A model generated the notes under the pieces. The model saw nothing but the letters and a program-made list of their open reading frames with translations, ran no database searches and was not told the DNA's origin. Shown here one piece after another: positions 1 through 53,447 of a stretch of DNA of 64,000 bases (position 1 is its first letter; every line of letters begins with the position of its first letter). Made by a program: the position numbers and the translations under genes. The DNA lies in the IMG/VR virus record IMGVR_UViG_3300010399_000031, positions 179,404 to 243,403 of that record. One strand, given 5' to 3'.

Positions 1-1
1 G

Positions 2-352
2 AATCGCCCGTGGTTATTCAATGTATCAAACGGCCACAGTCACCCAGTATAGCGGAGTGCATCAATAGCAGACATTCACACAAGGTGGGTCAGTGTATCA
101 TGGAAAGTTAATTACCCATGGCATGAGAGTGTATTAGAGGATCAAAGACATCCAATCCCAAGCAATGTATCATAGTAGGGAATTCACCCAGTTGGAACAA
201 ATGTATCAAAATGTCGTATTCACCCATTCTTTGAAAATGCACCATCACCCCTTATTCATCCACCAAAAGGAAGTGTATCAAGAAGCACAACTCACCCATT
301 GGGTTGTAGTGTATCAACAGCAGCAATTCACCCAATGCGATACAGTGTCGCC
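2..352 (+). repeat. TIGR-like dual-repeat guide-RNA array (36-nt period; 9 complete units, likely truncated by the window edge)
   Basis: Repeat 1, consensus A(G/A)TG(T/C)ATCA, at 20, 56, 92, 128, 164, 200, 236, 272, 308 and (degenerate) 344. Repeat 2, consensus ATTCACCCA, at 2, 38, 74, 110, 146, 182, 218, 254, 290, 326. Every interval is a unique 9-nt spacer. Adjacent to a Nop-domain gene. Confidence 0.93.
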
Positions 353-409
353 CACCACGACACACTAAGAAACCATTTTTATTCGAACTAAAGAAAGGAA
401 TAGAGCACC

Positions 410-1663
410 ATGAGCCAAGAAACGATTATCCCCACATACAACCCGAACATCTCCGTGATTCGCACGATGGTGCGCTCAGCTTACGACATGCAACTGTTGC
501 GCATCCAGATGGGCAACCGCGTGACCGCCAGCTTCAAAGTCAAGCTCGGCCTTCGCCAAGACGGCATGAGTGAGAAGGACCTCGAAAAGCAAGAAAAGGG
601 TCTACTCGATCAGCTACGTGCTTCTTACGCCCGCATCACCGACGGCATCATCGAAGAGCATGGTGAAGACATCAAGGTCAAGAAGTTGCCGACTGAAAAG
701 AAGTTCGTCGGCGATGAGCTGATTACCCACTACAGCGAATTGTTGCTCGTAGATAACTACCTGGCTACGCTCAGGAATGAAGAGCGACATTTCAAGGACA
801 TGGAGAAGATCCTAAAGAAGATCCCGGTCTACACCGAGTTCCTCGAAAACGTTCGTGGTATTGGTCCAGCCATGGCGGGCGTGATCATCTCCGAGATTGA
901 CATCTACAAGGCGCAGTATCCGTCTAGCCTTTGGATGTTGGCAGGGCTCGATGTCGTTCACGTCGGTAAGTACACCGACGATAAAGGGGTCGAGCGCACA
1001 GTGCGGGGTTGGGAGATCGACCAATGGTACTCCAACGACCAGAACATCGATAAGGAGTTCCTCGCTGAAGGCAAGTACCCGGTTCACTTCGAAGCCCATG
1101 GTCGTTCGCGTAAAGAGTTTTGTCTCGTGCGACGCACCTACGTCAACAAAGCGGGTGAGCAAAGTGAGCGTGACTCAATCACGTTCAATCCGTTTCTGAA
1201 GACGAAGTTGGTCGGGGTGCTCGGCACGTCTTTCTTGCGTGCTGGTATCGCAACGGTTGATGGTAAGAAGACCGGTGGTGCGGCTCGCTTGGCACTTGCC
1301 AAGGCAGAAGGGTTCGATCCGAAGGATTACGTTGAGATGGACGAAGATCAAGCAGTGATCGTCTACCTACGTGCTAAGGGTCACGAGGTTGTGGTGGAGC
1401 CGAGCCCTTACTCGGTGATTTACAACAACTACAAGAACCGTCTGAACAACGATCCGCGTCACATCGAGAAGAGCGCGCTTCACAAGCACAACATGGCCAT
1501 TCGCTACATGGTCAAGCGTTTTCTGGTTGACCTCTATAACCACTGGCGTAAGCTGGAAGGTTTGGTTGTCGCCCCGGAGTATTCGGAAGGGGTACTCGGC
1601 AAAGTACACGGTGAAGCTAAGGAAGCTGGTTGGCAACATCCGCGCTATCGTAGGTCCGCTTAA
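410..1663 (+). CDS. tasA: Nop-domain / IS110-related RNA-binding protein lacking RuvC (TasA-like)
   Basis: Coiled coil with 'YDMQLLRIQMGNR', 'LENVRGIGPAMAGVIISEI', 'SSLWMLAGLDVV', 'FNPFLKTKL' and 'HNMAIRYMVKRFLVDLY'. No N-terminal DEDD RuvC domain and no IS110 catalytic SG loop. SD AAGGA upstream; directly downstream of the array. Confidence 0.85.
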   Translation: MSQETIIPTYNPNISVIRTMVRSAYDMQLLRIQMGNRVTASFKVKLGLRQDGMSEKDLEKQEKGLLDQLRASYARITDGIIEEHGEDIKVKKLPTEKKFVGDELITHYSELLLVDNYLATLRNEERHFKDMEKILKKIPVYTEFLENVRGIGPAMAGVIISEIDIYKAQYPSSLWMLAGLDVVHVGKYTDDKGVERTVRGWEIDQWYSNDQNIDKEFLAEGKYPVHFEAHGRSRKEFCLVRRTYVNKAGEQSERDSITFNPFLKTKLVGVLGTSFLRAGIATVDGKKTGGAARLALAKAEGFDPKDYVEMDEDQAVIVYLRAKGHEVVVEPSPYSVIYNNYKNRLNNDPRHIEKSALHKHNMAIRYMVKRFLVDLYNHWRKLEGLVVAPEYSEGVLGKVHGEAKEAGWQHPRYRRSA

Positions 1664-1690
1664 ATCCAGTCATTCAGAGAGGAATTTACC

Positions 1691-2065
1691 ATGAGCATCA
1701 AAGAACTTCTGGAACCGTTTCAAGTCGACGCTGAACAGCAACCGATTACACCCGAAGTGTTTTTTGCACGAAGCTTTCAAGTCGCATTGAGGGACCTGAA
1801 TATCACTTCGGTGAAATGGGACGAACTGATGTCGGCGTATCTGGAGAAACACTTCGCTGCACAAGGGGTGGTGGCAACTCGTGCAGATATTAAATCTGCA
1901 CGAGCAAACCTCTCGAAGCAACTGTGCGAACTGAACATGTCGTGGAAAGTCTATCTGAAGGGCATGGAAATGCTCGGCTTCGATATGGTCAATATCCGAC
2001 TTGCTGGCGTCAAGCAGGAAGAGGTCCAGACTACCTTGGGATTAGCGGTTAAGCTTCCTCAATAA
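1691..2065 (+). CDS. hypothetical protein, likely co-transcribed with the Tas-like gene
   Basis: ORF with SD GAGGA, 27 nt after the upstream stop; terminator follows. Confidence 0.75.
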   Translation: MSIKELLEPFQVDAEQQPITPEVFFARSFQVALRDLNITSVKWDELMSAYLEKHFAAQGVVATRADIKSARANLSKQLCELNMSWKVYLKGMEMLGFDMVNIRLAGVKQEEVQTTLGLAVKLPQ

Positions 2066-2087
2066 ACAAAAAGGATGGAATAGAAAC

Positions 2088-2117
2088 GAGAGCTTCGGCT
2101 CTCCCTTTTCTTTTTTT
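2088..2117 (+). terminator. intrinsic terminator
   Basis: GAGAGC-TTCG-GCTCTC followed by a T-rich tract. Confidence 0.8.
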
Positions 2118-2179
2118 CCCGAAATACCAGAAATCGAACCCCTCAACAAGCTACAGTAAGAAAATATAAGGGAAACAAA

Positions 2180-2521
2180 ATGAGTGAGAGAAAGTTGTTT
2201 GGAATCGGTCAACGTGTGACCCACTTCGACGGGGGTCCAGGTACGCATGGTAAAGGTACGATCGTCGCTTATAACGGTGTGAAGCCAGATAGCTATGCGG
2301 CTAAGAATCCCGCTAAGGCAGCTGAATTAGTGGCTGGGTGTTTTACTGACCCGAAACTGAAAGAAGCGATGGCGGGCGCTTTGGTCAACAGCTTCTACGA
2401 TGGTGATCGATATCCCTACGTCGTACAGTGGGATCCGCGTGTCGACGATAGCGACATCGCGCGGAAATACCCGAATGGGTACAAAGACGTCTACGGTGAC
2501 GAACTCAAACCCATCGAGTGA
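2180..2521 (+). CDS. hypothetical protein
   Basis: ORF with SD AAGGGA. Confidence 0.75.
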   Translation: MSERKLFGIGQRVTHFDGGPGTHGKGTIVAYNGVKPDSYAAKNPAKAAELVAGCFTDPKLKEAMAGALVNSFYDGDRYPYVVQWDPRVDDSDIARKYPNGYKDVYGDELKPIE

Positions 2522-2546
2522 AAAAATCTTCGATTGACGACATAAG

Positions 2547-2570
2547 TGGGGACTCCGTAAGGAGTCCCCA
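2547..2570 (-). terminator. hairpin between convergent genes
   Basis: TGGGGACTCC-GTAA-GGAGTCCCCA; CTTATGTC follows on the - strand. Confidence 0.7.
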
Positions 2571-2574
2571 AACG

Positions 2575-3324
2575 TTACTCTATCGACGTAACGCTCCAGA
2601 AGTCTTCAGCCAGATCTGGCGAAAGGACATAGTCGAAGGGCAGGTAGAAGTAACCATTTTCACCCCAGCCCGATCCCCAGCTATTCCTAATAATGAAGAG
2701 ACGCTTGATGCGATCGTAACCGACGATCAACACGGCGTGACCACCCAAGCATTGTTCCTTGTTCACATCGGGCATGGGTACCAAACCGCTGGCTGCCACT
2801 TCGTCCGATTCGAGCGAATCGTAGACGTAGATGCCAAAGGCGATCGGGTAACCCGATGCAAGCGCGTGCAAAAGGTCGTCTTCGGTTTGATTCACACGGC
2901 GGTACGCAATCGCTTTGTGTTTCAAAGCGTCGTTGTACGCTTCGAGCGAGGGCTTCAGTTTGAAGTTTTCCTCGACGTACGGACACAGCGTTTCGTTGCA
3001 GGTACCCAGCTGTGCGATCACTTTGATGCCGTCGCGGATCTCGGCACCCGAGTCTTCCGTGAGTGTGCCTTCGAGACCGCGCTCGCCGTAGTAGACGAAA
3101 AGGCGCGAGAGACGAATCGGTTGCTCACGCTGTTTGTTCTCGTCGTACTCCAGCGCCCCGACGATGGCGTGGGCCGTGCACGAACCCAACTCACCTTGGT
3201 CTTCGACCGGGGAGCAGCCAGGGCGCAAATCGATCTGGTCGGGAATATCGATCGGTGCAGCTGCCGAGTATTTGTGGTCACGCGGATCGTGTTTGTCTTT
3301 GACACGATTGTACAGTCGCTTCAT
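2575..3324 (-). CDS. papain-like cysteine peptidase (family C1A)
   Basis: Catalytic motifs DQGELGSCT, GGHAV and RNSWG..WG..GYF; 'IDLRP' start of the mature domain. Confidence 0.93.
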   Translation of the reverse strand: MKRLYNRVKDKHDPRDHKYSAAAPIDIPDQIDLRPGCSPVEDQGELGSCTAHAIVGALEYDENKQREQPIRLSRLFVYYGERGLEGTLTEDSGAEIRDGIKVIAQLGTCNETLCPYVEENFKLKPSLEAYNDALKHKAIAYRRVNQTEDDLLHALASGYPIAFGIYVYDSLESDEVAASGLVPMPDVNKEQCLGGHAVLIVGYDRIKRLFIIRNSWGSGWGENGYFYLPFDYVLSPDLAEDFWSVTSIE

Positions 3325-3402
3325 GTTTCACCTTAAGCGTAGCGTTGAAGTGGGATACTTCATACGATCGCATTAACTTTTTATATCGAGAAGGAACAAA
3401 TC

Positions 3403-3858
3403 ATGAGCGAGCATCAAACTCAGAATGTAGGTGAATCTTCCAGGACACGCGATGTTGTTCTGGCAATGAAGTCTGGAATGAAAGATGAATCGATTTGGGA
3501 GAAATTTAAAGATTGGGGAGAACAAGCTGAAAATCAGATGTATCGGCAGGCTGATGTCGATCTTCAAATCCCGAAAGAAAATTCACCCTACTCCTGCGAC
3601 ATCTGCATGGTTGCGATGCCGCATATTTTCCAAAGGAAGACAGACGAGTCTTGGGTGGTTGGATATCGGTTTATCATCGATCACATCTATTTTGATGGTG
3701 AAGAAAAAGAAGTCAAGCGCTATCAAGACTACTGCTTTTTAGTGTTAGCTGAAGGTAGCAGTTTTGCTGGAGTAGGACTCGGTAAAGACACCTTCATCGG
3801 TGAATTCATTCTTAAAGAAGACATCGAGAAATTCCAGTCGATGATCAAGACTCACTAA
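3403..3858 (+). CDS. hypothetical protein
   Basis: ORF with SD AAGGA, in a tightly packed + strand run. Confidence 0.7.
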   Translation: MSEHQTQNVGESSRTRDVVLAMKSGMKDESIWEKFKDWGEQAENQMYRQADVDLQIPKENSPYSCDICMVAMPHIFQRKTDESWVVGYRFIIDHIYFDGEEKEVKRYQDYCFLVLAEGSSFAGVGLGKDTFIGEFILKEDIEKFQSMIKTH

Positions 3859-3869
3859 AAATAAACGAG

Positions 3870-4235
3870 GTGTTTCAAATGCATGCAATCAAAGCAGATA
3901 CTCCGGAGATTCTGATCGACTGGATTCGAGACCACTGTGTCTCGGTCGAAGTGTTTCGGGAGATCAAAGACTGGACCATTCAAAAGCTCCAGCAAAGTTT
4001 GGATAATAACCCTCACGCCCATGATCAAATTTCTTACCTGATTTCACCGGTAAGAGCCACCCCAGCTGTGGGTGAGACGTTCGATGGATATTCGTTTGAA
4101 ATCATCATCGAGCATCCGAACGCCGATCCGGAGATGGCCATTACCTTCTTTCGCGCTGACACCATGGGGCGTATCGTCGGTACCCTGAGTCGCAAAGGAG
4201 TGCTCTCCTGGGTGACGGCTCAAGACGAGGAGTAA
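3870..4235 (+). CDS. hypothetical protein
   Basis: packed ORF; start may be the ATG at 3879. Confidence 0.7.
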   Translation: MFQMHAIKADTPEILIDWIRDHCVSVEVFREIKDWTIQKLQQSLDNNPHAHDQISYLISPVRATPAVGETFDGYSFEIIIEHPNADPEMAITFFRADTMGRIVGTLSRKGVLSWVTAQDEE

Positions 4236-4238
4236 GCT

Positions 4239-4811
4239 TTGAAGATCATTCGCAACCCCTATTGGCGCGATGAAGAGTTAATGATGCTCACCATCAAAGA
4301 CTTGGAACGCCGCCGACTACCCAGCATCGGAGTATTCGAGTGTAATCAATTGACTCGGGCAACACAAAAGGGTAGTAAGTTAAGATCGCCGATCACCTCG
4401 CTCTCTATCCTACCCGAGGATCTCCACGCATGTGTCACCATTGTGAGTGATCCAGAAGACGAGGGAAAGGAGATCGTCAGTATTCGGTTTTATCAAAAAG
4501 TGAAAGAATCACCTGATCTTGTTGTCTTAGAAGACTGGTGTATCTATATCCCTAAAGGGTTGACCCATCTTACGGAGATAGCGCACCGCGTTTCAAGTCG
4601 CTTTGCTCAATTCTTTTTCTATTACCGCGATGCATTTGATGACCCAGTATTCGTTAGAGATTGGGATCGTGTGATTTACGGTTCTTTTAGCGATACATCG
4701 GATAGTTTAGCTGTATTTTTGAAACACAAGCAAGAAGAGGAGCAGCAAAATGATCAAGAAGATAGCACCAGTGACGGGAGTGCTGGGAGGGATGGTTCTG
4801 GAGCAACTTAA
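4239..4811 (+). CDS. hypothetical protein
   Basis: packed ORF, TTG start after GAGGAG. Confidence 0.65.
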   Translation: MKIIRNPYWRDEELMMLTIKDLERRRLPSIGVFECNQLTRATQKGSKLRSPITSLSILPEDLHACVTIVSDPEDEGKEIVSIRFYQKVKESPDLVVLEDWCIYIPKGLTHLTEIAHRVSSRFAQFFFYYRDAFDDPVFVRDWDRVIYGSFSDTSDSLAVFLKHKQEEEQQNDQEDSTSDGSAGRDGSGAT

Positions 4812-4968
4812 GACGCGACTCGGTTTGATGACGAGCGATGAAGCGAAAGCCAAGGCTTCGCACTACGATGCGTGCATGCAGGCGCTTGCTCCGGATGATC
4901 CGATGCATGTGGATTACTCGATCAAATACTACGACTACGCGCTGTACGCGGATCTACTTGCCGCTTAA
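4750..4968 (+). CDS. hypothetical protein
   Basis: SD GAGGAG; overlaps the end of the previous ORF. Confidence 0.6.
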   Translation: MIKKIAPVTGVLGGMVLEQLKTRLGLMTSDEAKAKASHYDACMQALAPDDPMHVDYSIKYYDYALYADLLAA

Positions 4969-4974
4969 AAGGAG

Positions 4975-5355
4975 GTGGTCGTGAAAGCTGGCAAATTCAT
5001 CTTAGGGCTTCAGGCGTTGGAAGTGGTGGCTTCACATGCCAAAGACGTGCAGAACGCCAAGCTCTTTTTGGCATCCATTGCCATTGCCAAGACCAAGCAA
5101 CGCCAAGCTGAACTCGGGGTGCCGTGTGGTTCAACTTATCGGGCTCGGTTTGTAGAAGGGATCGAAAACATTGAGTTTGCCGGTTCAATCTCAATGGATG
5201 GTTTTCTCATCGAGTACAAGATCGGACCCAATCCACCGGTTGAGGACAGGTCGAAGTACGTTTATCTGCATTACTTCGGCCAAGTGGATGAGCAAAAAAT
5301 GCTTGTGCAGTTTTACAAGATCGACAATTTCCCAGAACTGGACGATTCAGAATGA
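4975..5355 (+). CDS. hypothetical protein
   Basis: SD AGGAGG; ATGA overlap with the next ORF. Confidence 0.7.
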   Translation: MVVKAGKFILGLQALEVVASHAKDVQNAKLFLASIAIAKTKQRQAELGVPCGSTYRARFVEGIENIEFAGSISMDGFLIEYKIGPNPPVEDRSKYVYLHYFGQVDEQKMLVQFYKIDNFPELDDSE

Positions 5356-5945
5356 AGATCAAGAACTTTGGTTTTGACGCGCCGCGTGAGACACAGACCA
5401 TGCAGCGCATTTTGAGTGACATCGAAAAGCGCGCGCCACTGCCGCAACTGAACCTCGTGTATCAGACTTCGTCATTACGTCTACCAACTGAGACGGGCGG
5501 ACAACGCATGATTCCTTGTATTTCGTGCACCGTCAACAACGAGAGCAAGGAAGCGTTTCATGCCGCAGTGGTCGATACCGATCCAACCAATGAAGAGTTG
5601 ACTGTACTGCTCACCCACACGAACGGTGGGTCGGTTGGTTTTCGCACAATCTACACGTTCAAACCCCAGGCGGCGGTTTTTATCTCGTTCGACATTTTGA
5701 AGTTCTTCTACGAACGCGTGCCGACGCTTGAAGCGCTCGATGAGGAAGGTAACACCTTGCCTAACCCACTTTTTCACAAACCGCTTGAAGTGGAAAACGC
5801 ACTGAAAGCGGCGTACAAGGATCTTCCGGAGAGCTACACCTGGAAGCTCAATGTCGAGGCACGCAAGCCCGATAACAAGCCAATTATCGTGTGGCACGCC
5901 GAGAAAGACGAAGATTCGCAATCGCCCACGGAGAGCGAGCAATGA
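5352..5945 (+). CDS. hypothetical protein
   Basis: translationally coupled ORF. Confidence 0.75.
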   Translation: MKIKNFGFDAPRETQTMQRILSDIEKRAPLPQLNLVYQTSSLRLPTETGGQRMIPCISCTVNNESKEAFHAAVVDTDPTNEELTVLLTHTNGGSVGFRTIYTFKPQAAVFISFDILKFFYERVPTLEALDEEGNTLPNPLFHKPLEVENALKAAYKDLPESYTWKLNVEARKPDNKPIIVWHAEKDEDSQSPTESEQ

Positions 5946-6358
5946 CGCATGAGTGTATCGAGTTAAATGGTCCGGAAGTAATTCACTTCATCCAAGAGAA
6001 TCAGATCAATCCTCAGCTATTGGAGGACTTGGCTCAAAGCGTGATGCGATTTGAAACTCGCTACAGCGGCGAGATGAACCAAGTGATCTCCTCCAGCACC
6101 GATCTGCGCGCCGTTACCGTTCGCACCGACGAAGGTGAGCATGACGGGTACATGGTCACGGTTCATTACTACAAACAAGCCGATCCGAAAGACCCATCGG
6201 GCTGGCACACCCGACTTTGGTTCTTGACCAAAACCGAAGAAGACAAGATCAACGGCATCTGGGAGTTGGGTGAAAACATCGAACAGGCGGATCTTAATGA
6301 ATCCGCACTCAAGATGACCAAGTACGACGTACCCTTATTCGTGCCGAAGGCTGATTAG
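5942..6358 (+). CDS. hypothetical protein
   Basis: ATGA overlap at 5942 favoured over the track start 5891. Confidence 0.7.
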   Translation: MTHECIELNGPEVIHFIQENQINPQLLEDLAQSVMRFETRYSGEMNQVISSSTDLRAVTVRTDEGEHDGYMVTVHYYKQADPKDPSGWHTRLWFLTKTEEDKINGIWELGENIEQADLNESALKMTKYDVPLFVPKAD

Positions 6359-14013: not shown

Positions 14014-14304
14014 ATGTTGTATTTGAAAGTAATGTCGAATGAAGATTTACCGGATACCGATCCGCTTAAGGATTTCAGCATCATTCCGATCAATAACACT
14101 GATCGATTGGTGTTTGTGAAGGACCAGTCTTATCCTGAAACGGATGTGCACTGGTGTGCGCTGATTGGTCCTCACGCAGGGTCGAACCAGGATGGATTTG
14201 ACATTCCCAGTCACGACAAAGACCGAGTGGTCCCCTTAACTGGCAACGCCTATGTTTTGAACGAGCAAGGCAAAACCATCGCCAGTCACGGTGTCGTGAA
14301 ATAA
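14014..14304 (+). CDS. hypothetical protein
   Basis: 'MLYLKVMSNE...LTGNAYVLNEQGKTI'; SD AGGA. Confidence 0.75.
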   Translation: MLYLKVMSNEDLPDTDPLKDFSIIPINNTDRLVFVKDQSYPETDVHWCALIGPHAGSNQDGFDIPSHDKDRVVPLTGNAYVLNEQGKTIASHGVVK

Positions 14305-14950
14305 AGCTGTCTGATGAGCCGTGCAAGTCGGCAGATGAGAATCCAATACACGCGATACCTCGCCGCGTGTGGATTTCGTCGGGTGCAAAGCCCACGAAAT
14401 AACGAAGATCACATCGTGTGTCTTGGAAGGACCTCACGGTGGTAGGCCAGATTGCTTAGGACGTCGATGAGCCACTTTGACCGGTGGTGTCCCGAGAGCA
14501 TCTACCTTTTAGATCTTCGTGATTACAGCGGGCGCGCGATGCGTCAAGTTGTGACCTTCTAACCGAATGGAGGAAGGACGCAGCCTGTAAGAACCTATCT
14601 GGGTGAAAGCAGACACCCGTGGACTGACCTCCACGTGAGGTAACGACTGGTCAGAATCGTTATCGAAGATTTAGGTATCTTACGGGGTGCGGAAGTTATG
14701 AATCCGAACCGATGCCTCGCCGGCATTCGCCGAGGAGGGAGTCGCTTGATTCCCTCCTCACACTAGCCTTCATCTTCCCGCAGCTTCGAGTCACACCACC
14801 ATTCGTGTTCGGCAAATCCGAGCGAGTTGGGGCAATGTGCCTAGGCTGCGGGAAGATGTGGGTTGGTCGACCTTGCATCGATGCGCTTTGAGTTGATGGG
14901 TCATGGGAAGAGGGGCGGGGGAGGGCTAAAGCTCTCCCCCAATCCTTATT
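14305..14950 (+). ncRNA. large structured ncRNA (about 640 nt), class unknown
   Basis: many nested helices, a 14-bp perfect stem (14771-14784/14845-14858) and a candidate kissing loop CTGACC/GGTCAG; ends in hairpin 14917-14940. Confidence 0.7.
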
Positions 14951-14980
14951 TATGCCGGAAAAAAAGGATGAGATAAGAAA

Positions 14981-15436
14981 ATGAAATACTGGATTGATGC
15001 AGAATTCAACTCATACGGGGGTCAGTTGATTTCCCTTGGAATGGTGCGTGAAGACAATGAAAGTCTTTACCTGGTGTATAACCGACCGATGCACATTCAT
15101 CCCTGGGTGAAAGAGCATGTGATGCCGTATTTGGATTCAGTGCCAGATCATATTTCGATTCATCGGATCTTTCCCTCCAATTCAGCTAAGTACATCGAGA
15201 AGTTTATGGCGAGTGATGACAATCCTATCGTTATCACCGATTGGCCTGATGATATCTCGTTTTTCAGTGAGCTTCTTCTGACGGGGCCGGGCACGATGAT
15301 CAACATTCCACGGATATCATTTCGCATGCATCGTATAGATGCTTACCCCACGAAAGTCGAAGGTGCGGTGCAGCACAACGCCTGGTGGGATGCCGTGGCT
15401 CTGAAAGCTAAGTGCGAGGAGCTTGGCTTGGAATAA
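14981..15436 (+). CDS. DEDDh 3'-5' exoribonuclease (Rv2179c/RNase AS-like)
   Basis: IDAEFN..GG.LISLG (ExoI), WPDD (ExoII), HNAWWDA (ExoIII). Confidence 0.8.
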   Translation: MKYWIDAEFNSYGGQLISLGMVREDNESLYLVYNRPMHIHPWVKEHVMPYLDSVPDHISIHRIFPSNSAKYIEKFMASDDNPIVITDWPDDISFFSELLLTGPGTMINIPRISFRMHRIDAYPTKVEGAVQHNAWWDAVALKAKCEELGLE

Positions 15437-15463
15437 AGTAAAAAATACACCACTTTCTATTAT

Positions 15464-16020
15464 ATGCGAGAGTGCTCCGCCACAGTGGACGTCCGCCTTA
15501 ACGCTTTCTCCTTTCTGGCGTTTTAGGTCGATGACTGCAATGTTGTATCGATTGGTCGAGCACAATTTTCGCAAGCCGGAGTCGTTGTCCGGACGCGCTA
15601 ACTTTCCGTGTAGGCGCGAGAGCCTGGTTTCCGACACTTACTGGGATAGCGCCCGGCGTCGGATAAACGGAGCGGGTGGAGCTACGCTAGGCTCCATCAA
15701 GTTGTACGCATGAGTGACAGGTCGACGGCCACCCAGGAGTTCTGGTAGCCTGATAGATCGACCACCTACGGGACGCGGAGGTGCTTCCTCCAGAACACCG
15801 GTTCGCGCATCCCGACTCGTTCACTCACTGAGCGCGCAGCCTGCAATGCTGTTAGGACTGAATTCGAATAGGTCTTGATAGCATTGTGGGATGCTCGTTC
15901 GAAACGCAGATCCGCTAGTCGATTCACCAAACGACTCCACGCGCTAGGGAATTGACAATCGAACTAGGGTTTTGCTTTCGCGCATCGGTGTGGTAGGGGT
16001 GGCTTCGGCCACCCCGCTAT
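15464..16020 (+). ncRNA. large structured ncRNA (about 560 nt), class unknown
   Basis: 20-bp G-U-rich hairpin 15840-15890; long-range GGAGTCGTT/AACGACTCC; multiple stems; ends at GGGGTGGC-TTCG-GCCACCCC. Confidence 0.7.
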
Positions 16021-16049: not shown

Positions 16050-16526
16050 ATGGACTTTCTCTACCACGGCTCAGCCTTTAAACAAGACGAATTGAAACCT
16101 GGCTTTCACCACACCGGTAAGAAAGTCAATTGGGATCAAACGGAAGCGAACATCTGGCTTTACGCCACTACGCTCCGAGAAGAAGCTATTAGCCTAGGTT
16201 TTGCTTCAGCAGTGGAAAAGCAGTACGATGTGAAGCGCTACCACACGGAAGGCAAAGACATTCACTTCGATGTAAGAAAGGGCGAGACACTCAAACCACA
16301 TGAGCTGAACGAAATCAAAGTTTATCTGTACACGATACAGTATGATAAACGTGATGGCTGGGTGAAAGTGAACAACCAGTTTAACGGGATTGACCAAGAG
16401 TACAAGACCACCCATGTCATCAAAGAGAACCTCTTTAAACGAGAGGAAATCAATGTTGAGCAATGGTTGAAAGACAAGAACTTAACCATCGCTACTGAGA
16501 GTATGCCGATCTGGGCAAAGTGGTAA
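16050..16526 (+). CDS. hypothetical protein, probable head cargo
   Basis: MDFLYHGS start; C-terminal ATE site and PIWAKW tail. Confidence 0.75.
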   Translation: MDFLYHGSAFKQDELKPGFHHTGKKVNWDQTEANIWLYATTLREEAISLGFASAVEKQYDVKRYHTEGKDIHFDVRKGETLKPHELNEIKVYLYTIQYDKRDGWVKVNNQFNGIDQEYKTTHVIKENLFKREEINVEQWLKDKNLTIATESMPIWAKW

Positions 16527-16636
16527 TGTAGATTATCTTGGTTATATATAACAGGAATGATGAAGCAAGGACTTCTTTTAGGGGCTGTCCATTTGGACAG
16601 CCTTTATGCCCTTAATTGGTAAAAGGAAGAATCACC

Positions 16637-31968: not shown

Positions 31969-32015
31969 GGTTCACACCCCAGAAGCATTTTCTAAAACGC
32001 ACCAATGAGGTAATA

Positions 32016-34274
32016 ATGTCTGCTCTGACCCTTTTCCGGCATAAGGCCCCGAAAGCAACGCCGTCCGCAACCGCATTGGACGATTTCGCCCAGCAACTGC
32101 GTCAACACATCGACGGCGCTGGTGCAACGTTCAAAGATCCCTCGCTTGGCGCGGCTGCTGTTGCGATGGAGAACTTCAACGAAGACGTCGCGGGTCGCAT
32201 GACCGACACGCTGCAAGAGTTGAATGTCGCGCTCGAATCGGTGCTGCAAAACATCGGCATGCCGCTCGCTTCGGCAAACGACAAAGAAGATCCGTATCAC
32301 AAGTTTGGCGTTACCAAGACGCAGATGGAGTCCGCTATCGCTGCCGGCATCATGGCCTCGAACGTGGAAGCCGCGCTCGGCGCAACATATGCGGCCGAAT
32401 CGATGCGTGTTCAGCCGGACACGGCGTTCCGCACGACGAAGGTGATGGATGTGTTCGCGCCGGACCAAGTCTCGCCGGACAAGCGTCTTGCGCTCGAAGC
32501 GTACGACGAGAAGGACAACAAGAACGCGATGGTGTATTCGGTCGCGTACAACATGCAAGCGGCCAAGCAAGACGCGTTTGCTGAAATGTTCTTCCCGACG
32601 GTCGTCGTCACGCCCGATCAGGTTGGCTTCACGATGTCGATCCGCCTGATCAACGTGTACAACGAAGTGCGCCGCGACATCTCGGGCAAGCCCAGTCAGA
32701 ATTTCAACAAGCGCAACATCGTCCAGGCCGTGATCGACCCGACGATTCTGCGCAACGACACGACCCGTATGTACCCGGTCGTGCGTCCGGAAAGCACCGC
32801 CATGTTCGTTTCGTCGGGCGACGTCGCTCCGCGCAACATCACGCTGGATGACGGACAGGTCATCACGACTGCGCCGTTGGCGATGCAAACGGAACTCTCG
32901 CTGATCGCGATTTCGCAGACCGATGCCCTGCTTCAGACCGGCATCATGGATTCGACCGATGCGATCGATACGGCAATCGGCCTGGACAACCTGTACTTGA
33001 AACTCTCGGGTACGGTCAGCGGTACACCCACGACCGAAGTCGTGAAGTTCTCCACGCGGCGTCTGCCCCTTGCGACGTTCAACTACGCTCCGCAAGGCAA
33101 CTACCGCACGATGCTGCTGAACTTCAGCACGACGAGCCTGCTCGTAAACGGCACGACGACGAAGGTCGACGGCTCGACTTCGCAGCTGCTCACGTTGCTC
33201 CAATCGGGCAACTACAACGTGCGACTGGGTGTGTACGTCTCGGGTCAGGTGAACTGCGAACTGGGTGACACCAACATCATGGCGTCGAAGGTTTCGGTGC
33301 AATCGGTGCGCAATGCCGCCGGAGAAGCGCTCGATCTGACGACGGGCGACGGTGCAACGATCGTTGCTCTGTTTGCCAACGCCACGATGATCGGTTACGA
33401 TCTCGAAGCGCGCCGTACGAACAGCAACCGCCGTGAACGCGGTCAGTTGCTCGACACGACGTTCTACAACCAAGTGTACGCAGTGCCGCTGCGGGCTCCG
33501 ATCACGATTCCGCGTCCGCTCACGATCGGCGATGCCAACGATTCGAGCGATCTTGCCGCTCTGATCACGGCAACGCACGTGCGTACGACGAACGCGGCGA
33601 TCGACGAGCTGCTTAATGCAGCGAACGTACTTGAAGCATACGTCTCGAATCTCGACCCGCTCGGTACGATTCCGGACGTGCTCGGTGTGACGCGTTTCCT
33701 CGTGACGCCGTTCTTCGAGCGCAAGACGATCGACGTGGCTGCGGTCATCAACAACCTGACGTCGCAAAATCGTCCGGCGGATCTGTCGGCTGTGATCGTG
33801 AACTACCTGCGCGACACGGTCTACCGCATGTACACGGCGTCGGGCTACAAGGCTGCGGCTGACGCGCTCGCTGGCGGTATCGGTCCGGTTCCGACGGTCA
33901 TCATCGGTACGGATCCGACGATCGCACGCTACATCAATGTGGAAGGCGATCTGCGCACGCTCGGCGGCTCGTTCAACGTGCGTGTTGAGTCGACGCTGAA
34001 CACGAACATGGCTGGTAAGATCGTCGTGTCGTTCGGCGAATTCGGTACGGGCAAGGAAGGTGTGCCCAACCCGATGCACTTCGGTAATATGGCGTGGAAG
34101 CCGGAACTCACGCTCGTGCTGCCGCTGCACCGCAACGGCGCAAACAGCAAGGAACTCACGGTTCAGCCGTCGTTCCTGCACGTCGTGAACCTGCCGGTGA
34201 TGGCCATGTTCGACGTCGTGAACTTGTCGGCCGCTGCGACCGACAAGATCGCTATCGACTTCCACAACGTCTGA
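32016..34274 (+). CDS. major capsid protein precursor (phiKZ gp120-like)
   Basis: 752 aa; 'ALEAYD' maturation site, 'QDAFAEMFFPTVV', 'TNSNRRERG'; extreme codon bias. Confidence 0.93.
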   Translation: MSALTLFRHKAPKATPSATALDDFAQQLRQHIDGAGATFKDPSLGAAAVAMENFNEDVAGRMTDTLQELNVALESVLQNIGMPLASANDKEDPYHKFGVTKTQMESAIAAGIMASNVEAALGATYAAESMRVQPDTAFRTTKVMDVFAPDQVSPDKRLALEAYDEKDNKNAMVYSVAYNMQAAKQDAFAEMFFPTVVVTPDQVGFTMSIRLINVYNEVRRDISGKPSQNFNKRNIVQAVIDPTILRNDTTRMYPVVRPESTAMFVSSGDVAPRNITLDDGQVITTAPLAMQTELSLIAISQTDALLQTGIMDSTDAIDTAIGLDNLYLKLSGTVSGTPTTEVVKFSTRRLPLATFNYAPQGNYRTMLLNFSTTSLLVNGTTTKVDGSTSQLLTLLQSGNYNVRLGVYVSGQVNCELGDTNIMASKVSVQSVRNAAGEALDLTTGDGATIVALFANATMIGYDLEARRTNSNRRERGQLLDTTFYNQVYAVPLRAPITIPRPLTIGDANDSSDLAALITATHVRTTNAAIDELLNAANVLEAYVSNLDPLGTIPDVLGVTRFLVTPFFERKTIDVAAVINNLTSQNRPADLSAVIVNYLRDTVYRMYTASGYKAAADALAGGIGPVPTVIIGTDPTIARYINVEGDLRTLGGSFNVRVESTLNTNMAGKIVVSFGEFGTGKEGVPNPMHFGNMAWKPELTLVLPLHRNGANSKELTVQPSFLHVVNLPVMAMFDVVNLSAAATDKIAIDFHNV

Positions 34275-34281
34275 ACGCAGG

Positions 34282-34398
34282 GCATGGTGAACGTGCATGA
34301 CCTCAATGGCTTCACGCCATACTCGGGGTGACGCTTGGAGTTGAGGTCGTCAGAAGTAAGTAGAGTTTAAGCTTCTGACGCGTTCACCCGAGCCATGC
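34282..34398 (+). ncRNA. structured three-way-junction RNA in the capsid 3' region
   Basis: GGTGAACG/CGTTCACC, TGACCTCAA/TTGAGGTCG, GTCAGAAG/CTTCTGAC, GCATGG/CCATGC. Confidence 0.55.
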
Positions 34399-52049: not shown

Positions 52050-53447
52050 TTAAGCAGGTATTGATACCGCCATGACATCTGTGACATCCAATTCAGCTAA
52101 CACTTTCCCCCAACCATTGCGTTTAAGGGATGTGATGAGCGTGTCCACTTTTTTGTCAAGCGATTTGACCGCTTCAACGGTGAGGGCGACCATTCTATCG
52201 TACTGTAAAGTGCGATAGTTTTCACCTGAAATGGATAAACCTGTGTGAGGGTCTCGATCCAACACAGCCAGACCTGTGAGTTCTGGAGTCACCTTATAAG
52301 CGTCGCCAGCCAATAAACCCATGTGTCGCCGGGTCGTGTCAGTCCCGGTAAGTTTGGCGGCCAGCTCGTTGTGACGATAAGTCACCCCATTAAGGTGGTG
52401 AATCTTGCTTAACGGATTGGTGATCGGTTCAATATCTTCTTTAAGCCTCTCATCTGACCAATATGCCCAGATATCGTTTGCGCAGTAAATCGTTCCATTT
52501 ACATGAACGTCGCCCAAGGTAACTGTTTGCCCGGCGGCTGCATAAACGTAACCTCCGCTTCCCGGATTGGCTGGAGCCTTCCCGTTGATCTGGTTTTGCA
52601 AAGACGTGGTGGTGCTGTCAATTTGGCTGGAGGTGTATGTACCAACCTGCGTCGCTGTCACCAGGTGGGGATTAGACGTATTGTTTTCATGCGTGGTGAG
52701 TGCTGAGTTCACCGTGTTGATGTTATTCTGAAGCGTGGTTTGCGCCGCGCTTAAATTCGCATCAGACTGCGCCGTGGTGTATGCACCCACTTGCGCTGCT
52801 GTCACTTTGTGCGGGTTGTTAAAATCCGCCAGGTGGTTATTCAATGCGTTTTGCAACGCTTGAATTTGTGAAGCAATCGACGTAGTTCCTAGATCGATAT
52901 ACTTGTAGATCGCATCGTGGGACGCTTCATCGCCTAAGAGGATTGCTTTCGAAATCCGGTCGAGCGCTGCCACCGTGTATTCAAAACCGATCAGGTCTCC
53001 CGCGTCGTGTAGGTGAGCGCTCGGTGCAAACGCAGCGGGTTTGCCGATAATGACAGGCCAAGCCGCAGGGCGATCATCCAGATTCAGATTGTAAATCTGA
53101 TCAATAATTGCTTGCGCCGAAGCTGAATACTCACCCCCAACCACCTGATATTGAAGCGAGATGTTGGCCGACACCGTCTGGTCAGTGATCATGATGATAC
53201 GCATGATCTCCAACCCAGTTTCCACACTCGCCATCGTCTCCAATTCAGCGCAGTAGAACTGATCGGGGGCGAGTGACAAGTTGGTCGCCATATCGGTGAT
53301 GACCAACCCTTGCGTGTAAAACGGACCGTACTCCGGGGCCACCGCTCGAATCTTGCGAGCGGGCATCGACTGAAGTTCCCCGACTACGAGGTTATTCGGA
53401 TTGACGCCCGTCGGATCAAACGGATAGCGGATTACTGGCGTGCTCAT
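52050..53447 (-). CDS. tail fibre protein with intramolecular chaperone (peptidase S74) domain
   Basis: YPFDPTG N-terminus, NPH.VTA.QVG repeats, W|SDERLKEDI autocleavage motif. Confidence 0.85.
   Translation of the reverse strand: MSTPVIRYPFDPTGVNPNNLVVGELQSMPARKIRAVAPEYGPFYTQGLVITDMATNLSLAPDQFYCAELETMASVETGLEIMRIIMITDQTVSANISLQYQVVGGEYSASAQAIIDQIYNLNLDDRPAAWPVIIGKPAAFAPSAHLHDAGDLIGFEYTVAALDRISKAILLGDEASHDAIYKYIDLGTTSIASQIQALQNALNNHLADFNNPHKVTAAQVGAYTTAQSDANLSAAQTTLQNNINTVNSALTTHENNTSNPHLVTATQVGTYTSSQIDSTTTSLQNQINGKAPANPGSGGYVYAAAGQTVTLGDVHVNGTIYCANDIWAYWSDERLKEDIEPITNPLSKIHHLNGVTYRHNELAAKLTGTDTTRRHMGLLAGDAYKVTPELTGLAVLDRDPHTGLSISGENYRTLQYDRMVALTVEAVKSLDKKVDTLITSLKRNGWGKVLAELDVTDVMAVSIPA

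Follow-up and report, generated by a model that had tools for sequence, protein, structure and literature searches.

We found that the DNA analysed here opens on the last (3′) part of a dual-repeat TIGR array of 25 units, with a tasA gene behind it, on the genome of a jumbo phage from soil, and we regard the explanation developed below, taken as a whole, as probable. The window (the whole stretch of 64,000 nucleotides that was analysed) is the final 64 kb of a genome of 243,403 bp, which is complete and held on a single contig. Genes for a DnaB-like helicase, a polymerase, structural proteins and tail proteins lie in this window; the genome is that of a jumbo phage, and the phage was detected in soil runs, none of the runs that contain the locus being an RNA run. 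TIGR-Tas systems were first described in 2025 (PMC12045711); the present locus adds a new member to this family, in its TasA branch, and is not a new kind of system.

The full array extends over genome positions 178847-179746 and is the only one of its kind that a genome-wide scan found in the 243 kb. The window opens inside it, so to speak in mid-array: 16 units lie on the upstream side (genome 178847-179422), the first of them starting 556 bp 5′ of the window and fifteen and a half of them falling outside it (genome 178847-179403), and the tail of unit 16, cut at the window edge, covers positions 1-19 of the + strand with a degenerate loop repeat AATCGCCCG (2-10) and a spacer B TGGTTATTC (11-19). 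Nine complete 36-bp units (17-25 of 25), each consisting of an edge repeat, spacer A, one loop repeat and then spacer B, follow at 20-343 (+), and the array closes on a 3′-truncated copy of the edge repeat, AGTGT, at 344-348 (+). The periodicity of 36 bp is far above chance expectation, and the layout of 9+9+9+9 nt repeated 25 times, in which two 9-nt repeats alternate with 9-nt spacers, is that of a dual-repeat TIGR array. Repeat 1, the edge repeat, has the consensus AGTGTATCA and is written A[G/A]TGTATCA in the units of the window; repeat 2, the loop repeat, has the consensus ATTCACCCA and is written A[T/G/A]TCACCCA. Two units are off length (one of 37 nt and one of 35 nt), one unit has a 10-nt and another an 8-nt spacer A, the unit at genome 179279 is badly degenerate, and all nine spacer positions vary across the array. 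The nine A/B spacer pairs that the earlier note had listed were all correct when re-read from the sequence; its count of nine guides and targets did not stand, as the true number of guides is 25. A CRISPR array was considered and rejected, since we see two alternating 9-nt repeats and 9-nt spacers rather than one repeat of 25-36 nt, and a Pfam search of the four ORFs that lie within the window's first 3.3 kb gave neither a Cas match nor any other confident one.

The + strand reading with repeat 1 as the edge repeat, cut near its middle into units TATCA-A-ATTCACCCA-B-AGTG, had been put forward before us, and as far as sequence comparison can tell five independent lines of evidence agree with this polarity and these unit boundaries: published tigRNAs, the truncated ends of the array, the pairing within the edge repeat, the + strand layout of promoter, terminator and gene, and the array orientation seen in 29 of 30 related loci. 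The synthetic mature tigRNAs of TaTasR (AGCCA-N9-UGAAACCCA-N9-UGCG) and SpTasH (AGCCA-N9-AGACAACCA-N9-AGCG; both in Faure 2025 Table S3) run from the 3′ half of the edge repeat (5 nt) through spacer A, the loop and spacer B to the 5′ half of the edge repeat (4 nt), and when this phase was mapped onto the present array it gave UAUCA-A-AUUCACCCA-B-AGUG, the same 5+9+9+9+4 arrangement as in the proposed unit. By analogy with TaTasR and SpTasH, nine mature tigRNAs of 36 nt are predicted at 24-347 (+). At the array ends the first edge copy retains ..ATCA and the last AGTGT(A), as also in the relatives, and truncated terminal edge copies are a stated rule of TIGR arrays (Faure 2025). Internal pairing is the published criterion for calling the edge repeat, and positions 2-7 of repeat 1 can pair in 21 of its 25 copies and positions 3-6 in 23, compared with 7/25 and 3/25, respectively, for the loop repeat. 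Finally, 36-bp arrays adjoin homologous genes in 29 of 30 related IMG/VR loci, and the orientation of the array motif equals that of tas in 29 of the 30. The minus-strand reading was rejected: it gives UG....ACU/AAU repeats without a box C, and it opposes tasA, the promoter/terminator layout and 29/30 relatives. By analogy the cut would fall at AGUG|UAUCA, but the truncated copies at the array ends would fit a cut at AGUGU|AUCA just as well.

Box C is UCA in the edge repeat and CCA in the loop repeat, and the box D and box C motifs of the two repeats match each other, as they do in TIGR arrays. The G at position 2 of box D is found in 16 of 25 edges and in 5 of 25 loops, that is, box D is partly relaxed, and since so few loops keep this G and one unit is badly degenerate, some units may be inactive. 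The observation that spacers are preceded by CA and followed by A holds for the whole array: an A follows the spacer in 50/50 cases and CA precedes it in 46/50, position 1 of the repeat being A in 50/50 and positions 8-9 being CA in 46/50. The earlier note had taken this A, in place of UG, as the possible sign of a distinct repeat subtype, an idea that we abandoned because the SpTIGR array has already been described with an 'AG box D' and because the related loci L001-L030 use AG....(C/U)CA. Repeat pairs of this form in the clade include AGCGAGCCA/AGAAACCCA, AACGAGTCA/AGAAAACCA and AGTGAACCA/AGAAACCCA. What is a little unusual in the present array is that the box D G of the loop is retained in so few copies.

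On the 5′ side of the array, a 208-aa ORF comes to its end before a strong intrinsic terminator (a GGGAGGA/TCCTCCC stem and a T-run), after which an AT-rich stretch carries CTAGAAAATTTGAGACATATATAAC, about 27 nt 5′ of the first edge remnant. Closely similar copies of the promoter-like motif occur on the + strand at genome 53305, 96173 and 195948. Aligned as (C)TAGA(T/A)..TT..AG..ATATATAAC, the motif has four + strand copies, namely window 16500-16552 (genome 195948), genome 53305, 96173 and 178820; the last directly precedes the TIGR array, and those at 53305 and 96173 are also alike downstream (..gcgaa..ggtaacg..). These four copies possibly represent a phage promoter class or small-RNA starts. 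No promoter-like element was found between the array and tasA, which starts at 410 after an RBS-like AAAGGAA (394-400, +; read from the sequence, 9 nt 5′ of the start codon), and co-transcription of array and gene thus appears likely. Between the two lies a 6-bp hairpin on the + strand (345-363), GTGTCG (345-350) and CGACAC (358-363) around CCCACCA (351-357), which overlaps the AGTGT remnant just as previously described. It is weak (about -7.9 kcal/mol, z -1.44, with 16 of 200 shuffles folding equally well) and was missed by the terminator scan because it has no T-run. The closest relatives (L001, L002, L004, L005) lack it, whereas in L006 and L007, which are more distant, true terminators stand at this position; its role is uncertain, the candidates being an attenuator, a protector of the 3′ end, or chance.

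The tasA gene (410-1663, +) encodes a 417-aa TIGR-associated Nop-domain protein, an assignment based on phmmer, NCBIfam, an AF2 model and Foldseek. In phmmer the protein matched TaTasR (9mty, E 2.9e-8), its best PDB sequence match, and SpTasH (21kl, E 4.1e-6), with alignments that span the Nop parts of TasR and TasH alone. The NCBIfam model NF052498 (TIGR_Tas_endo) scored E 1.9e-26 and 93.4 bits, just under its cut-off of 100 bits, which a 284-aa relative (L010) clears with 133 bits. A Pfam search of TasA returned no match, nuclease domains included, and a megablast of window 1-6000 against cultured phages returned none either. An AlphaFold (AF2) model built from an alignment of 46 homologues reached a pLDDT of 85.6 and was used in place of a single-sequence model (pLDDT 34), which was discarded. 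When this model was submitted to Foldseek, the top 11 PDB matches were all TasH or TasR chains with probability 1.0, followed by IS621, ISCro4, Nop5 and Prp31; a Nop-domain Tas gene therefore adjoins the array, as in TIGR-Tas loci. The N-terminal 135 residues are modelled as an all-helical coiled coil (residues 12-135) with neither RuvC nor HNH, and because of this helical N-terminus without a nuclease domain the product is a TasA, the nuclease-free subtype.

Two clade-specific insertions distinguish the protein in the alignment with its 284-aa relatives. The first (about residues 187-230, window 968-1099, +) lies between GLDV..G and GRSRK, and the second (about residues 279-330, window 1244-1399, +) between SFLRAG and SPY..YKNRL. 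A search of residues 182-335 against a protein atlas returned unnamed viral clusters only, nothing informative. In the C-terminal loop (1580-1609, +), Y391 and H400 align to the residues of SpTasH, Y289 and H296, that carry out metal-independent processing of pre-tigRNA (PMC13421893); in the pairwise alignment Y391 coincides exactly with Y289 and H400 stands two residues off H296. Such a C-terminal loop of the Nop domain is typical of dual-repeat systems (Xu 2026 preprint), and the Tyr/His dyad of TIGR-Tas proteins is indeed found here, with Y391 kept in at least 90% of the 46 homologues and H400 invariant. An IS110 insertion sequence was rejected as an explanation of the gene, given 17.9 bits for NF033542 against a cut-off of 140 and no N-terminal catalytic domain; the 'transposase' label of PHROG and GenBank stems from the common Nop-type domain. 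Among the relatives we found no conserved accessory gene (e.g. ParB) beside tasA; they do not keep the ORF at 1691-2065, and orf2518 is only loosely syntenic.

Among described systems, FpTIGR-TasA of Flavonifractor plautii (PMC12045711; Xu 2026 preprint) is alike in having a solo, nuclease-free effector with a Nop domain, dual-repeat units of 36 nt and 9+9-nt spacers, and FpTasA (Faure Table S1) has clear sequence blocks in common with the present protein, such as S(I/L)T(F/Y)NPFLKTKL.GVLG and (E/P)Y..(A/G).LG..H. However, FpTasA and TasA proteins in general have about 290 aa, compared with 417 aa and two insertions here; box C is CCA/UCA here and not CCN, box D is A(G), and the present locus sits on a jumbo phage with the array 5′ of the gene. 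SpTIGR-TasH of Salicola phage CGphi29 is also phage-borne, with an AG box D, a CCA box C, a Tyr/His self-processing loop and an edge of AGCG|AGCCA (here AGTG|TATCA), and its edge repeat AGCGAGCCA is identical in L020, L021 and L025, which are relatives of the present locus. In contrast to TasA, SpTasH carries an HNH nuclease at its N-terminus and cleaves DNA, and the SpTIGR spacers are N8+A (16 variable nt), whereas all nine positions vary here. TaTIGR-TasR of Thermoproteota (9MTY) has in common with the present system the 5+9+9+9+4 phase, the two-pair mini-stem of the edge and the A+revcomp(B) target rule, and it differs by its RuvC nuclease domain and UG box D. The IS110 bridge-RNA recombinases and the archaeal box C/D Nop5 RNPs have the Nop-type RNA-binding fold, and the former a weak NCBIfam match; in contrast to them we found no DEDD/RuvC transposase domain, bridge RNA, fibrillarin or L7Ae partner here.

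Taken together, the mechanism that we consider likely is one in which self-processed dual guides lead a nuclease-free TasA dimer to 18-bp sites outside the phage. It builds on published experiments with relatives and on the anatomy of the locus, the homology and conserved residues of TasA, the comparative polarity and the lack of self-targets described below. We infer that transcription of the + strand would start from the promoter-like TAGA..TATATAAC, about 27 nt before the first, 5′-truncated edge, and run through the array and probably into tasA. A TasA dimer would then assemble on box D and box C (AG...(C/U)CA) of an edge repeat and a loop repeat, one of each, and the conserved Tyr/His loop would cleave the edge repeats at or next to AGUG|UAUCA, giving 36-nt tigRNAs made of UAUCA, spacer A, AUUCACCCA, spacer B and AGUG. 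Each tigRNA would lead the dimer to an 18-bp A+revcomp(B) site, spacer A pairing on one strand and spacer B on the other, where the complex may bind and bend the DNA and so block transcription or replication with no cutting. TasA and dead TasR do repress transcription in reporter assays (Xu 2026 preprint). The targets are expected outside the phage, most likely in competing mobile elements or in the host.

A quite different possibility is that the locus is a decaying relic, or that TasA has acquired another activity through its insertions, so that the model of 18-bp guides does not apply. The relaxed loop box D, the single degenerate unit, the units of 35 and 37 nt, about 100 inserted residues without recognisable relatives and the NCBIfam score below the cut-off (93.4 vs 100) could all be read in this way. 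On the other hand tasA is intact, 44 alignment columns are invariant across the 46 homologues, the processing His among them, homologues that carry these insertions too are common on contigs of jumbo-phage size and keep long arrays, and the array is identical in assemblies made six years apart. We therefore judge decay or a wholly different activity very unlikely, and the insertions could add a further activity to the protein.

Indeed, independent assemblies from soil runs of 2017 and 2023 have the identical array, and the only differences between the two across a 3-kb region are a C>T in tasA at window 1225, which is synonymous (Gly272), and one T fewer in the T-run of the upstream terminator (genome 178786). 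The locus thus adds evidence of array stability over six years in soil. The 2017 and 2023 contigs begin at different points of the genome, which suggests that the phage map is circularly permuted or circular.

For RNA-guided binding as proposed above, the geometry to examine follows from the published ssDNA target of TaTasR, an oligonucleotide which reads spacer A and then revcomp(spacer B) (Faure 2025), and the choice of A+revcomp(B) as first target order, made before our analysis, matches it. In the phage's own genome (25 guides, 243 kb) not one site had fewer than 2 mismatches. When up to 2 mismatches were allowed we counted 1 site, and for up to 3 mismatches 7, compared with 0.21 and 5.6 per 25 guides for 600 mismatched A/B pairings; when gaps of 0-2 bp were allowed, the counts were 1 and 15 against 0.9 and 17.9 expected. 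The alternative geometries revcomp(B)+A, A+B and B+A, used as controls, were equally empty. Likewise, 346 distinct guide pairs, those that could be parsed from 29 related arrays, gave no excess in the present genome over control geometries or shuffled pairings. Since a complete 243-kb genome surrounds this long array, it can be stated cleanly that the phage does not target itself. These counts bear on the idea that the array is a timing switch directed at the phage's own genes, for which one could cite the best self-match, that of unit -195 (16/18, genome 134262-134279, - strand), lying 20 nt inside the start of the ORF at 134239-135147. Such a match is compatible with chance (0.21 per 25), closer sites (0 or 1 mismatch) are absent, and the relatives' guides miss the genome as well, so that self-regulation by the array is close to refuted. 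The guides of the preferred mechanism most likely have their targets outside the phage, in competing mobile elements or in the host.

According to the literature of 2026, natural TIGR targets "cannot yet be determined", because the loci lie mostly on short metagenomic contigs and because 18-nt guides have many false matches. Exact scans of viral contigs with units 20, 56, 308, -520, 92 and 128 found 0, 0, 1, 2, 0 and 4 contigs, respectively, which is the level of chance. With unit 20 we also searched 596 Gb (185,579 species genomes) and obtained 13 scattered hits where about 17 were expected, with no concentration in any taxon; the hits fell in unrelated taxa and in conserved coding motifs, one group being apparently pyrH, as read from the flanks. 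Target enrichment was absent from the own genome, the relatives and six exact scans of public collections. The enrichment of 17-18/18 matches over shuffled pairs that the earlier note had set as its test was seen in none of these sets, and the targets remain predicted.

Among targets outside the phage, host genes could be silenced during infection. A reprogrammed TasA represses a chromosomal gene of E. coli (Xu 2026 preprint), host silencing is among the possible roles that authors list in the literature, and the guides do not match the phage itself. However, the unit-20 scan of species genomes gave no more hits than chance would, and the closest cultured phages by DnaB, those of Burkholderia and Ralstonia, are only 45-48% identical. 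Furthermore, no guide pair is common to the present array and any relative, and complete turnover of spacers at about 79% TasA identity suits moving targets better than conserved host genes; a takeover of the host by these guides seems rather unlikely to us. In L001-L005, whose TasA is about 79% identical, the arrays are longer (about 860-2980 of each locus) and carry the same guide-pair blocks in changed order, for example ATCTGCTCC/TTGTGATAG in four loci, and these shuffled identical blocks point to gain, loss and shuffling of guides unit by unit.

With unit 56, a scan of metagenome contigs recovered nine contigs in three independent groups. One high-GC group (L045, L046, L048, L052, L053) has the exact unit-56 target within an intergenic block of about 70 nt that is conserved, with two copies in L053 (657 and 3277). 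By eye, the block is flanked 5′ by GGTACCGCC direct repeats and a divergent helix-turn-helix- or excisionase-like gene, and 3′ by a sigma-70-like TTGAAT..CATAAT. As it has no second guide match and belongs to no Rfam family, we put this group down to chance.

All contigs recovered from the target scans were checked against all 25 guides, and one of them, a 9.2-kb phage contig (L049/L054, hereafter L049), has the unit-56 target at 18/18 as well as a unit -520 target at 17/18, both in the A+revcomp(B) order. Its genes code for a primase, an N6/N4 DNA methylase and proteins resembling DpdA and thioredoxin, and the contig has no homology to the present phage. In theory about 0.006-0.013 second hits with at most one mismatch are expected over all fetched DNA (roughly p 0.01, in a test that was post hoc), and in the empirical controls a second hit arose in 1 of 600 mismatched pairings and in 0 of 1160 relatives' pairings on 335 kb. 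Several guides landing on one contig is a usable statistic for target hunting, which yielded this one lead. It could mean that the array is a weapon against competitors, its guides serving to silence unrelated phages in the same host or to stop them from replicating, and the literature reports that TIGR loci mostly sit on mobile elements. Against this, L049-type sequence occurs in freshwater, lake, wastewater and aquaculture runs (run X8 contains 93% of the words of L049) and the present phage in soil, with zero samples in common; in L062 and L068, relatives at 83% identity with L049, not one site came within 3 mismatches; exact-protein look-ups found no longer contig of the L049-type phage; and the other viral scans stayed at 0-4 hits each. 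Moreover, the mismatch of the 17/18 site falls at spacer A position 4, which by our reading of the TasR mismatch rules belongs to the seed. We hold it doubtful that the array as such serves against competitors, and only tentatively suggest that the unrelated phage represented by L049 is the target of at least two guides out of the 25, those of units 56 and -520. If this were true, these would be the first identified natural targets of any TIGR system, a jumbo phage would be using nuclease-free RNA-guided DNA binding against rival phages, and one could see a candidate for an escape mutation in the seed mismatch of the 17/18 site.

Among cultured phages, a homologue of the present TasA could be recognised in phiRSL1 alone, a 231-kb jumbo phage of Ralstonia, where TIGR biology could be tested at the bench. 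Its ORF034 is a 30% identical TasA homologue, which makes the 'transposase' annotation of this ORF out of date; behind it, an unannotated stretch of 1.4 kb contains about 35 degenerate units of 36 nt. This array was located at L074 3540-4840 (NC_010811.2, about 14285-15585), with edges AGTG...C. and loops AG.CACCC.; it differs from the present one in lying 3′ of the gene and in its more degenerate repeats, and the protein is shorter.

Two minor observations concern neighbouring sequences. Near the TasA locus of L009, at 5346-5740, a coding repeat with a period of 18 nt (GCTAAGGTATATGGTAAT-like) is a false positive for simple period scans. In the window, at 31992-34298, a 768-aa ORF on the - strand and a 752-aa ORF on the + strand overlap almost completely, and at most one of the two is a real gene.
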